The position numbers were made by a program, and so were the translations under genes. Source: Paraphysomonas bandaiensis (taxonomy: Eukaryota; Protista; Chrysophyceae). From it: a DNA stretch of 64,000 nucleotides. Positions within the stretch are counted from its first letter, which is position 1; each line of letters opens with the position of its first letter. A model generated the notes under the pieces. The model did not search any database. It was not told where the DNA came from and saw only the letters and a program-made list of their open reading frames with translations. The stretch covers positions 14,207 through 78,206 of the forward strand of contig CBFFRP010000559.1 of assembly GCA_965644295.1 (NCBI GenBank), given 5' to 3'. Below are positions 45,357-51,298 of this stretch, in pieces.

Positions 45357-46342
45357 ATGATACTCATGAATACACGTATTGGAGTGACCTTCATCACCCT
45401 CTTCATAGCAGGTAACATCATCCTCTCTTTATCCCTCTATTCATCCATACATACATACCCATCCATCCATATACATACATCCCCATATCTCATATATACA
45501 TATATACAGGTGTAACTTATCATATGGCCAATGAAATTACACCACTTAATATTGAAGGAAATTCAACAGAGATTCAAATTGCATTACAATCAAATGAGAA
45601 TACTGATAGTCAAGAGTTGGGTCAAGGGGAGTGGGAGTGTACATGTGATCAATTGTTTTTCCCGACTAGTATACCAACATCATTACCATCATCAGGGCCA
45701 ACATATGCACCAACATATGCACCAACATATGGACCAACATTTTCACCAACATTTCAACCAACATCACCACCGACTTTTCAACCTACAATACGACCTGTAT
45801 TACCTAAGTCACCTACTGTTGCACCGAGTATTCGTAGTGCTAATCAACCTTCCAAATCACCTACTAGAAGTCCTACATGTTCTCCCACTTTGACCGTTTC
45901 TCCTACACAATCACCAACCACTACGAGCCCAACACCTGTACCGACCTCGTGTCCTTCAACTGTGCCAACCACTTTCCCTAGTGGTACCCCTACTATAATG
46001 CCTAGTGGCCAACCTACTTCCCTTCCATCCTCGCTCCCAACCGGATGTCCTTCTAGAGTACCCACTGGACTACCAACTGGTTTGCCATCAGGTTTTCCAA
46101 CTGTCTCCCCCAGCGCCCCTACTCCAGCTCCTGTAGACAACTCCCCTACATTCACTCCTACTCGTGCTCCAACCTTCAAACCTACGGCCACTCCAACTTT
46201 CAAACCGACTTTCGCGCCTACTAGTGCTCCTACCCTTCAGCCTACTGTCGTGGCTATGGTCCCCGTAAGACGGCGCAGAGGAATACCTGAGGCAGGCGAT
46301 GAACACAACTCTCCTGAATCAGAGAGAAACATAATTGTATAA
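45357..46342 (+). CDS. Secreted Pro/Thr/Ser-rich (PT-repeat, mucin-like) protein
   Basis: Exon 1 MILMNTRIGVTFITLFIA is signal-peptide-like. An intron (~45412-45509) is followed by an exon with PTYAPT/PTFQPT/PSGQPT repeats. Confidence 0.85.
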
Positions 46343-47650: not shown

Positions 47651-48123
47651 GTTTCCAGTTCCAACCTATTGAAAATCGTAAAAGTCGTGATATCACCGTT
47701 GTCATGAGTTTTGTGATATGTCTGATAAACGATAAACACAGGAATGAGAAACTTACGTTAGCGATAGACAACTTTGGAAATAATTAACACACAGTTCAGT
47801 AATTTGCTCAATTGTACTTGTACGCAGAGGATAATAGCACAATTATAAAAATGAAATTGATAGATCTATTTATCAGTACTCGCACCAATTGTCATAAACA
47901 TAATACTATTCAAAAGAGGCGACATCAGGTTATTGGCTATCCGTAACAAAAGTAAAATATAAAAAATCTCTACGTACAACATTGCAACGTGCATAAGTAA
48001 AACCAGTCAGCCGATGCTTAAGCAGCCGTGGAATAGATTTCGACATATACACGTCACATACTCGCATAGATTTGACTCCCATACCAGGCTACAACACATA
48101 GATATATTATCATTTCGGGCGCA

Positions 48124-50997
48124 TCACTTGTTAGCTGCCTGCACAATAGATTCCACATCGTACTGCCCCCTGAGGAAAAGGGAATATTAACATTAGAAAG
48201 AAGTCCCATACACTATTGACTACCACCATGCGGCAATATAACATTTACACCACACACTGAAGAAGAGTGTACTGTAGTGGTATACTAACCTCTTCATTGG
48301 AGATTCTTCAGCCGATTCATAAACCTCTAGTTTTTCATATGCACTACATACGCACATGTAAACATATACACATCAGTGTGCTAATAGTCATTACCGAGTT
48401 ATTATCTTGATCACTGCGGTCCAATGTTTGTAGTCATTACCATCACCAGCCATGAATTCACCAGTTGGGAGGGGGGACAATTCTGAAAAAACCTATGGTA
48501 TACAAGCGTAAATCATAGAAGCACAAAGCGAAATGTAACACTATCCTGTTCTGCGTAAAAATATAATACATTGCTACCATACATAATTTAAAAAGTGCAT
48601 ACACAAGTCACAATTTCTTTCTGGACTGCATACAAATCACTATCGAAAACGCATTTTGAAAACTTACCCTGGGAGCTAGCACAAACCTATATTTCTTGAC
48701 AGCCTCCTTCAAGTCATAGTCTGAAGTTGCTAGATCAAAGAGAGATATCTCACTCTGTCCTGTGAAAAGCGATCGCGCAGCCATAATACCAGTGGACATA
48801 TGTTTCGGGAAATATCTGGGGTACATATGCATGTAAGTACATGTAGCACTCAAATTTCACTACTAGAGTCTAATTTATGCGGAACTTTACATACATACTG
48901 AACACTATATGTAGGTAAACTACATACGCATTATACCATCATCTATCATAAAGAACGTCCCACAAAATACACACCACAGGCTCACCACATCAAAAATAAC
49001 GATTTCCACAGATATAATAGCATTGGTAAATACATTTCTTATAACATAATGTGTTCTTTATTCCAGTATTACAACTCATATCGCAAGCTAACCTGTAGTC
49101 CTGAACCAATCTATACTGAAATAGCTTATACGGTTTATCTGTCAGTGCATTGTTCCCCTTCTTATAGTCCTAACGGAAAGAATTAAAATACGAAGCAATG
49201 CGAAAAGTATGAATTACAAACATAGTACATCATACCTAAAAATACTATACGATGTACTGCACAATACACACATTTCAATACACAACCATTACATTATAAA
49301 CGAAAGCATGCATCGTATACTGAATTACATAACACAAGACGAATATTGCAAACACCCAAGTTCTGTTATCTACTACAATACATATTATCAACTTATCTAG
49401 ACAGGACCTACCTCTTCACTGCTATATATATCCAATCTACCCCTGTCAATGACAGCGTAACATTCGACAAGCTCTCCTCCGTCATCAATAGGTTCACGCC
49501 ACCACAATCTCCCACGTGCCTTGCTCATTGCCTCCTATTCATAGTTACGGTTTAGGATATTCTATTCATACACTGCAGAGCTCATCTGAAATTCAGTGGT
49601 TTGGTACAGCAAGCATATCACAGCTCTAGCAGCAAGGCAAACAGTATATATAACATGTCACACCGCAGTAGATTCATTAACCTTCTTTAGTAGAGTTACT
49701 TCTTCCATTTCAACTTCAACATCTACAGGACTCCGACTTCGCTCATCGCTTGTATGACCTTTTGTTGGTGCTGATGACGACGTCGGAGTATGGAGGTAAT
49801 CTGGAGAGAGTGCTGATTGAAGCTTGTCTACGAAACGAAATGGATTACACAGATTGCATACATACAACTATACAACAGCTACACCAAAGGCATTCCTGAA
49901 GATATTTGGTAACACATTCAATAATTAACGCATCATTAAGACTGTGTACCACGACGTACGAAGCAGCGCATAGTACAGCATGGATTGAGATAATACCTGA
50001 TAGAGAGGTCGTAACAGAATGTTTTCTATCAGGATGAAACTTTTTATAGCATCTCAAACCCTCATATACACACAATATAAAACCAGCTGTAAAGAGCACA
50101 GTGCTGGATATACAGACTGGTAGGGACACTTTAGCCCAAAAGTTAAATAGCAGCGTTAAAAACAGGCATACAAGTGTATATGCTCCCAATTTCATGATGA
50201 ACTTTCGTTGTGCACGCATATGTTCTGCAACAACAATGACAGCATTGTAATCAGATCCTTTCAAAGCAATTGATGGTCCATGAATGATAACCAGAGCACA
50301 TTGAGTTGTTACAAATGTACCGAGAGCTAATGCAAGATGAATAGAAGTATCAAATAGAAAATTCAAACCAAACCATGTGAATCCAGTGGTTGGGATTGTG
50401 ATTTCGCCAATGCCTGTGCATTATCATCAGCAGAGAGTTATAAGATAAGCAGATAATGCATCATATGTCCACATATCTATCACACATATCTTTAAACTAA
50501 ACCACTGAAAGATCTCATAGTGTCTCTTAAAGATCTCATACATCACTTCACTTCACTTCTATACATGTGTGTCTCTTAAAGATCTCATACATCACTTCAC
50601 TTCTATACATGTGTCTCTTAAAGATCATACATCACTTCACTTCACTTCTATATATATATATGTCTCTTAAAGATCTCATACATCACTTCACTTCACTTCT
50701 ATACATGTGTGTCTCTTAAAGATCTCATACATCACTTCTATACATATGCGCCTCTTAAAGATCTCATACATCACTTCACTTCTATACATGTGTCTCTTAA
50801 AGATCGACAATACATATATATACATATATACGTATACCGTATATTCACTTACCGACGTATGCCATTGCGGCTATAAATGCAGCTTGAGTGCCAACTGACT
50901 GCAAATTCGCCACATAAAGTTCAATTAATCGACTTTGCATGGCTAGCATGCCTTTTTCTAAATTAGCTTTGAGTAATTTCTTATCAGCAACCAACAT
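48124..50997 (-). CDS. Orai/CRAC-like 4-TM channel protein fused to a C-terminal PH domain
   Basis: TM1 LQSVGTQAAFIAAMAYVGIGE aligns without gaps to Orai1 [21 protein letters not shown], followed by three more hydrophobic helices. Later exons encode GRLWWRE...CYAVIDRGRLDIYSSEE...YRFVLAP...EFMAGDGNDYKHWTAVIKII (PH pattern). Stop TGA at 48124. Confidence 0.7.
50507..50805. repeat. ~45-bp imperfect tandem repeat (~7 units) in intron 1 of the Orai-like gene
   Basis: Unit TGTGTCTCTTAAAGATCTCATACATCACTTCACTTCTATACA. Confidence 0.9.
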
Positions 50998-51298
50998 GAT
51001 AGGGCGTAGAGGGGTGAGAACCCGATATGAAAGGTGCCCTAGAAGGTCTTGTTAAGATGAGTGTTAATGTATATATACATGCATATGGTCACAACTGCAG
51101 AGCTCTGCTTCTTCAAAATACAGATGAATACCGATGGAATACAGTGAGGATGTTAAGAGTAGTAAACTGAAAATCTATTAAGGATACTATTGGACTACGC
51201 AGTATTCTCTGTATATGTGTACGTGCGATGTTTGTACTATATTGACCTCCACTAACATATAATGAACCAATAGAGTCGACGATAAGCCATATATGTTC

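Follow-up and report, generated by a model that had tools for sequence, protein, structure and literature searches.

In a 64,000-nucleotide stretch of the genome of the chrysophyte Paraphysomonas bandaiensis (assembly GCA_965644295.1, contig CBFFRP010000559.1, positions 14,207 to 78,206 of the forward strand; hereafter the window), we analyzed a nine-exon gene on the minus strand whose coding sequence extends from 48124 to 50997. This expressed gene of 417 codons probably encodes a strongly diverged pore subunit of the Orai family that carries a cytosolic C-terminal PH domain. An initial annotation, made from the letters of the window, had flagged the identical interval and proposed an Orai-like Ca2+ channel of the Ca2+ release-activated (CRAC) type in which a PH domain senses phosphoinositides or the membrane in place of STIM.

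The gene model was read from transcripts. Contigs assembled from public sequencing runs were aligned to positions 48050-51050 of the window to define the exon limits, and at their joints all eight introns proved to be GT..AG on the minus strand. When the exons were translated one by one, with the frame taken from the running length, the coding sequence of 1254 nt consisted of 417 codons plus a TGA, starting at an ATG at 50997-50995 and ending at 48126-48124, with no in-frame stop. The transcript contigs extend upstream beyond 51050 into the 5' untranslated region (UTR), and the 3' UTR runs below 48124 down to at least 48050. The initial annotation had joined exons 1 and 2 within a glycine codon (G|GC) in the first transmembrane helix (TM1), and this splice was exact: exon 1 ends with ...AAMAYV and a single G, and exon 2 starts with GC and then reads IGEITIP.

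All nine exons were found within single contigs of 1430, 1574 and 1534 nt from runs X1, X2 and X3, which belong to three studies. In run X5, a poly(A) marine metatranscriptome, one 774-nt contig links exons 9 to 3, and a second crosses the joint between exons 1 and 2. Since single transcript contigs run through the exons of both channel and PH domain, the two halves lie on one mRNA, as the initial annotation had supposed. We also considered whether two adjoining genes, one for a small transmembrane protein and the other for a PH protein, had been falsely joined. Many database relatives are short models (~180-250 aa) that contain only the transmembrane part, as expected from such a mis-join, whereas the transcriptome-derived relatives P0097, P0111 and P0112 are full-length proteins with both parts, and the same arrangement is visible in five paralogues (L011, L012, L014, L015 and L019), that is, at no fewer than six loci including the window gene. 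The mis-join carries practically no weight, being ruled out by the single contigs that span nine exons in three runs. The spliced transcript was further seen in the poly(A) marine metatranscriptomes of runs X5-X8 with zero letter differences across positions 48050-51050; therefore, the organism or a near-identical strain lives in the sampled sea water and expresses the gene.

To place the transmembrane half, the window exons were searched singly, relatives of the encoded protein (P0004, P0025 and P0097) were used as stand-ins for structure prediction, and two family profiles were built, one full-length (A1) and one covering the transmembrane half only (A2, 56 rows). The only matches of A2 at E <= 10 among 177,635 distinct PDB sequences were six Drosophila Orai chains, with E values of 0.001-0.011. 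TM1 aligned to them without gaps, with the family glutamate on the selectivity glutamate E178, and a second aligned stretch covered TM3-TM4, including the W-x-K motif. Profile A1 matched no Orai among the PDB sequences and gave weak PH matches alone. In a Pfam scan, 31 of the 56 family rows matched Orai-1 (PF07856) below threshold, the best at 2.7e-4, and any other family was matched by two rows at most. Relatives scored 11-19 bits on Orai-1, for which the curated cut-off is 25 bits, and a paralogue on contig C430 of the same genome scored 24.0 bits (E value 3.5e-5) over positions 4-151 of the 173 in the model while matching A2 at 6.8e-30. A six-frame scan of the genome with PF07856 also detected C430, together with C296.

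The predicted structure of the transmembrane half pointed in the same direction. The AlphaFold2 model of residues 1-185 of the close relative P0004, with a predicted local distance difference test score (pLDDT) of 87.8, contains four helices (residues 2-51, 63-100, 104-143 and 146-174), of which the first, TM1, would run for ~50 residues from the cytosol to the glutamate. Read directly under the positive-inside rule, the loop charges of exon 2 fit a topology with both termini in the cytosol. Foldseek searches with this model were headed by the Orai structures 7kr5, 6bbi and 4hkr (probability 0.97-1.0, template modelling score 0.5-0.68, E value 0.025 or weaker). In a second look with VIA, 6bbi_B came out on top (Z 12.3, root-mean-square deviation 2.6 Å, 134 of 138 residues), and coverage of four helices was seen for Orai entries only. 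A shape search of the Atlas led to a haptophyte cluster at a template modelling score of 0.90 (root-mean-square deviation 1.6 Å over 179 residues), 34% of whose members carry PF07856, and language-model features of the family likewise led to Orai-1 clusters.

Several results nonetheless weigh against this assignment. Single window exons matched no Pfam family, and Orai-1 did not appear even at an E value of 10; the window locus was not among the genome-wide matches to PF07856, and no family member exceeded the 25-bit cut-off. The Z scores of 10-12 for Orai were not above those of generic helical bundles, and an unbiased structure search put Orai fourth, at Z ~10. Comparison with the canonical Orai of the organism itself, the transcript-derived protein P0096, which is divergent in its turn, showed marginal similarity: the family hidden Markov model gave it 2.8 bits, a score that 87 of 3000 shuffled sequences equaled, and when the family was aligned by hhalign to P0096 as a lone sequence the probability was 1.3%, yet with the register unchanged. 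Finally, the models depict the relatives P0004, P0025 and P0097 rather than the window protein itself. A word-indexed protein search with either P0096 or the canonical Orai exon of the genome as query returned P0096 alone.

These sub-threshold matches, the non-specific Z scores of helical bundles and the marginal similarity to P0096 would all suit a transmembrane half that is an unrelated four-helix bundle, such as a PGG-like one, and resembles Orai by convergence; a cluster of plant ankyrin-PGG proteins does match the model in the Atlas, at a template modelling score of 0.66. However, Orai was the sole family that recurred in each independent method, and the register of glutamate on glutamate stayed constant throughout. 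PGG, which the initial annotation had named as the alternative identity, gave way to the Orai-annotated cluster (0.66 versus 0.90) and was absent among the Pfam families listed for the 56 rows, while the C430 paralogue misses the Orai-1 cut-off by 1 bit in a match that covers almost all of the domain. We consider convergence very improbable. Curated thresholds were reached in none of these tests taken singly, yet Orai, and Orai only, was the answer from each independent one. Taken together, the transmembrane half, which makes up the N-terminal 180 residues, is very likely homologous to Orai, as a deep and separate branch, and the Orai-like region reported in the initial annotation, with its glutamate and valine in gapless register with E106 and V102 of Orai1, is borne out by the profile, Foldseek, VIA and Atlas evidence.

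The window gene belongs to a larger family. HMMER searches with exon 2 returned 64 matches among 1.84 billion representative proteins, and a profile search added ~30 further full-length members, every one "hypothetical"; the annotation of family proteins goes no further than this or, at most, PH protein. Full-length relatives measure 387-465 aa, are colinear with exons 1, 2 and 4-7 of the window gene and share the C-terminal motif of exon 9. Most members derive from metagenomes, and the named sources are the chrysophytes Paraphysomonas, Epipyxis and Chromulina, except for one truncated Symbiodinium record. That record, P0084 (302 aa, filed under Symbiodinium microadriaticum), is 75% identical to P0025 (JGI), whose near relatives are from Paraphysomonas; judged by this identity, it may be a contaminant of that Symbiodinium assembly or a genuine dinoflagellate copy.

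A search of the 62.5-Mb genome of the window gene with the family profile identified about a dozen further loci. The window gene is therefore not unique, being a member of a set of about a dozen that occurs alongside canonical Orai genes. The TM1 glutamate is present in 7 of ~10 of these paralogues, and the subfamily of the window gene has a strict G-I-G-E-I motif. The closest paralogue, L012 (contig C429, 106182-106775, minus strand), has an apparent intron at the same TM1 site, just ahead of GIGE; since the two genes appear to share this site, their duplication would be later than the gain of the intron. The C430 paralogue (L017, 1273-1917, minus strand) is a 214-aa frame of intermediate character, scoring 109 bits against the PH-fused family profile in addition to its 24.0 bits to PF07856, and no PH exons were found in the 1.2 kb downstream of it, up to the contig end.

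The residues that line the Orai pore are only partly retained. In the gapless TM1 alignment, the position of Orai1 R91 is Thr in 48 of 55 family members and in the window copy. Leu is found at the L95 position in 48 of 55 members (Phe in the window copy), Gly at G98 in 41 of 55 (Ala in the window copy) and Phe at F99 in 47 of 55 (Met in the window copy). The V102 position is mainly Thr, Ser or Ala in the family and Val in the window copy. The E106 position is Glu in the window copy, where both HMMER and hhalign aligned the Glu of GIGE, at the exon 1/2 junction, to the Orai selectivity glutamate. Further along exon 2, the cytosolic loop has a conserved GP..AL.G, and the end of TM3 (...FWAK) aligns to CWVK of Orai.

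Two of these features count against an Orai-type pore. The basic inner-pore residues R91, K87 and R83 are replaced across the family by Thr, Ser, Asn or Gln, with Ser, Asn or Gln in the K87 column, and the TM1 Glu is present in just 20 of ~50 family members (~40%), with Asp in another 4. Because the basic residues are absent and the Glu is often lost, ion selectivity, and even channel function, is not assured. The "CRAC-type" label of the initial annotation therefore stands only in part: the selectivity Glu is kept in this copy, but a CRAC-type pore is not a given since the basic inner pore of Orai has been replaced throughout the family, most members of which do not have the Glu.

We also examined self-association, using a tool calibrated on two copies; among proteins of solved structure, its mark is attained by 21 of 30 same-chain pairs and by 0 of 23 single chains. 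A four-copy model of residues 1-185 of P0097 passed with a score of 0.36, the best control being at 0.00. Contact agreement among the tetramer runs was at least 84%, and partner pLDDT was at least 62. The confident contacts were between TM1 helices at residues 37, 41, 44 and 48, which correspond to the R91/L95/G98/V102 face. Since four copies rather than six were run with a tool calibrated on two, this prediction has to be read with caution, and it may reflect the model's memory of Orai. The P0097 tetramer supports an Orai-like assembly, although such a prediction falls short of showing that assembly.

The missing basic ladder and the loss of the TM1 Glu in more than half of the family, along with a big paralogue expansion and variable TM1 ends that are compatible with diversified non-pore roles, could also mean that the Orai fold now serves as an anchor or scaffold that does not conduct, which would make the protein a PH adaptor tethered to the membrane. 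However, the pore-facing register of TM1, with its Thr, Leu, Gly and Phe positions, is the best-conserved part of the family, the window subfamily keeps its strict G-I-G-E-I motif, and the predicted oligomer contacts run along this same TM1 face. A non-conducting scaffold thus appears quite improbable to us. In the reading that we prefer, that of a diverged Orai-family pore subunit, the subunits would gather around TM1 as in Orai and form a cation pore whose outer mouth is ringed by Glu. Because of this Glu ring the pore is probably Ca2+-permeable, and its inner vestibule would be neutral because Thr, Ser or Asn replaces the Arg/Lys ladder of Orai.

The second half of the protein could be assigned more directly. 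In the C-terminal alignment of the family, 28 of 37 rows matched PF00169, the best at 1.5e-7 (single window exons gave no match), and two relatives have a precomputed PF00169 call. The AlphaFold2 model of residues 226-405 of P0025 (pLDDT 80.5) consists of strands, a partly helical insert, a capping helix with a Trp and a further helix; residues 71-85 of the model, in the insert, have a pLDDT below 50. Foldseek with this model yielded 74 PDB matches at E <= 0.001, and all of the best 50 of these 74 have a PH-type domain. The leading matches were the split PH domain of PIKE, SKAP55, AKT3 (AKT), Slm1 and the split PH domain of PLCgamma2, and comparison with isolated PH domains gave target template modelling scores of 0.7-0.8. 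The window exons align to every PH element, including the Trp of DYKHWT. The PH pattern that the initial annotation had read over four exons was confirmed, with GRLWW, CYAVI and LDIY in exon 4, YRFVLAP in exon 6, and EFMA and DYKHWTAVIKII in exon 7. Based on these models, we regard the fold of the C-terminal ~180 residues as settled, namely a predicted PH beta-sandwich with an inserted segment.

Since animal Orai channels are gated by STIM, we searched the genome for it with a model of the SOAR domain of STIM. Nothing rose above noise, the best E value being 0.62, which agrees with the absence of STIM from the initial annotation's proposal. Plants, green algae and diatoms have likewise yielded no STIM (PMC11085791). 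The genome does contain canonical Orai genes: at least three loci, on C66, C374 and C348, exceed the Pfam cut-off, and P0096 (245 aa) scores 102.6 bits against PF07856 and has no PH domain. One canonical Orai locus matches a transcript of Paraphysomonas MMETSP1103 at 99% identity. The loci on C66 (L001) and C374 (L002) have near-identical first exons and TM3-4 exons and give P0096 as their product; from this similarity, they may have duplicated recently, or the two contigs may be haplotypes that carry one and the same gene.

For a canonical phosphoinositide site, beta1 must end in, and beta2 must contain, basic residues, and specific phosphoinositide binding is a property of only a minority of PH domains. 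In this family, the Arg at the end of beta1 is near-invariant (33 of 34), and other subfamilies are basic at the beta2 positions as well (RKR, KR), with a loop net charge of +3 to +4. In the window copy, the segment from the end of beta1 to beta2 is REPIDDGGELVECY, which has a net charge of -4 and is the most acidic of the family. After the beta1 Arg it reads R-EPIDDGGELVEC-Y. None of the beta2 positions of the basic KXn(K/R)XR motif, which spans beta1, the loop and beta2, holds a basic residue, and the motif is accordingly absent from the window copy.

These data bear on the role that the initial annotation proposed for the PH domain in place of STIM, namely targeting or gating of the channel through phosphoinositide binding or membrane sensing. 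The proposal has a real PH fold, tethered to the cytosolic end of TM4, and the absence of STIM/SOAR in its favor; the structural neighbors of the fold include the lipid-binding PH domains of AKT, TAPP1, Slm1 and PLEKHA7, and the beta1 Arg and the basic beta2 positions of some subfamilies would fit a lipid site. Against this stand the loop charge and missing beta2 residues of the window copy and the lack of specific phosphoinositide binding in most PH domains. Lipid sensing by the PH domain of this copy is not supported by its sequence, and we judge the proposal unlikely.

A different kind of partner is suggested by two other features, the invariant GG in the beta1-beta2 loop and the conserved C-terminal motif, which together point to a specific, but not necessarily lipid, partner. 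Because the canonical lipid pocket is acidic in the window copy, a protein partner or the channel's own cytosolic helices would be favored over a phosphoinositide. Since the genome has no detectable STIM and the PH domain and helical tail occupy the place of the STIM-binding M4 extension of Orai, this tethered module is likely a built-in regulatory or targeting element. A more specific version, in which the module is a built-in gate in the role of STIM, such that a cytosolic or membrane ligand binds the PH domain and pulls TM4 as STIM does the M4 extension, seems rather doubtful to us, though worth stating.

The protein resembles animal Orai1 and Drosophila Orai (PF07856; 4HKR, 6BBF, 7KR5) in its four transmembrane helices, its long TM1 reaching into the cytosol and its cytosolic termini, as well as in an ALxxGFA-type TM1 core, a Val at the V102 position, a Glu at E106/E178, a W-x-K at the outer end of TM3 and a predicted self-association along the pore face of TM1. 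It differs from them in an identity of only ~13-16%, below the Pfam cut-off, in Ala and Met at Gly98 and Phe99 of the window copy, in the substitution of R91, K87 and R83 by Thr, Ser, Asn or Gln, in having no STIM partner in the genome, and in what follows TM4, where a linker leading to the PH domain and helical tail stands in place of the C-terminal STIM-binding M4 extension. Compared with PGG proteins (plant ankyrin-transmembrane proteins, PF13962), it shares a four-helix membrane domain, but theirs comes with an ankyrin array at the N terminus instead of a PH domain at the C terminus, and the Orai cluster has the higher shape score.

With the split PH domains of PIKE and PLCgamma2, SKAP55, AKT and Slm1, the C-terminal half shares the beta-sandwich and the C-terminal helix with its Trp and, with the split PH domains in particular, a segment of ~45 residues inserted between strands. 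Unlike them, it is joined to an ion-channel-like membrane domain, has an invariant loop GG and an extra helical tail ending in VE..V.AAN, and, in the window copy, is without the basic phosphoinositide motif.

Orai proteins that occur without STIM and retain the selectivity Glu have been described in pre-angiosperm plants, green and brown algae, and diatoms, including a "divergent" diatom clade (Murphy et al. 2024, PMC11085791), and how Orai is activated outside animals without STIM is stated there to be an open question (PMC11085791). The canonical copies on C66, C374 and C348 resemble these non-metazoan Orai proteins. The window family, in contrast, is more diverged than the organism's own canonical Orai and has a C-terminal PH domain, whereas the text of that paper contains no mention of a PH domain. 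A full-text literature search for Orai with PH or pleckstrin, and in algae and stramenopiles, found no description of an Orai-PH architecture, consistent with the initial annotation, which had not recognized it as described. Thus, the Orai family is known and the domain fusion is new, but this is not a new kind of system.

The exons and the TM1 intron are listed in the table below.

Table. Exons of the Orai-PH gene and the intron within TM1 (window coordinates).
Feature	Position	Strand	Description
Exon 1	50853-50997	-	ATG; conserved N-terminal cytosolic helix continuing into TM1 (…NLQSVGTQAAFIAAMAYV + first base of Gly codon)
Intron 1	50414-50852	-	GT..AG, 439 nt; interrupts TM1 three residues ahead of the Glu
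Exon 2	49997-50413	-	Remainder of TM1 including the Glu (G-IGE-ITIP), TM2, cytosolic loop, TM3, TM4, basic juxtamembrane stretch
Exon 3	49682-49827	-	Non-conserved Ser/Thr/Pro- and acid-rich linker from TM4 to the PH domain
Exon 4	49412-49534	-	PH beta1-beta3: ARGRLWWR, acidic loop EPIDDGGE, LVECYAVI, RLDIY
Exon 5	49093-49169	-	PH beta3-beta4 region (…KPYKLFQYRL)
Exon 6	48668-48815	-	PH inserted segment (partly helical, model confidence low in part), then strand YRFVLAP
Exon 7	48395-48492	-	Last PH strand EFMAGD and capping C-terminal helix with conserved Trp (DYKHWTAVIKII)
Exon 8	48290-48343	-	Helical tail beyond the PH domain
Exon 9, coding part	48124-48169	-	Family C-terminal motif VE..V.AAN (here VESIVQAANK) and TGA

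Most of intron 1 is filled by a 49-bp tandem repeat at 50520-50835 (~4.6 copies, 85% matches; alternative periods 39 and 88). Because short run contigs show loose ends at 50661, the 49-bp unit may recur elsewhere in the genome. Some 1.8 kb past the 3' end of the coding region of the Orai-PH gene lies a 272-aa open frame on the plus strand (45524-46342), composed mostly of Pro/Thr/Ser repeats (PTxxPT units) and mucin- or cell-surface-like in character.

The existence of a family that joins an Orai-like pore to a signaling domain, and that numbers about a dozen loci in one protist, provides a testable candidate for STIM-independent control, and it indicates that Pfam thresholds understate how widely Orai-type membrane domains occur. 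If the protein conducts, a single-polypeptide channel of Orai type whose inner pore is neutral would offer a helpful comparison for learning what the Arg/Lys ladder and the Glu ring each contribute. If the PH domain and tail do act as a built-in gate, this would be the first way of activating an Orai to be described from outside the animals, with the pore and the gate of a CRAC-like channel united in a single, self-contained polypeptide.

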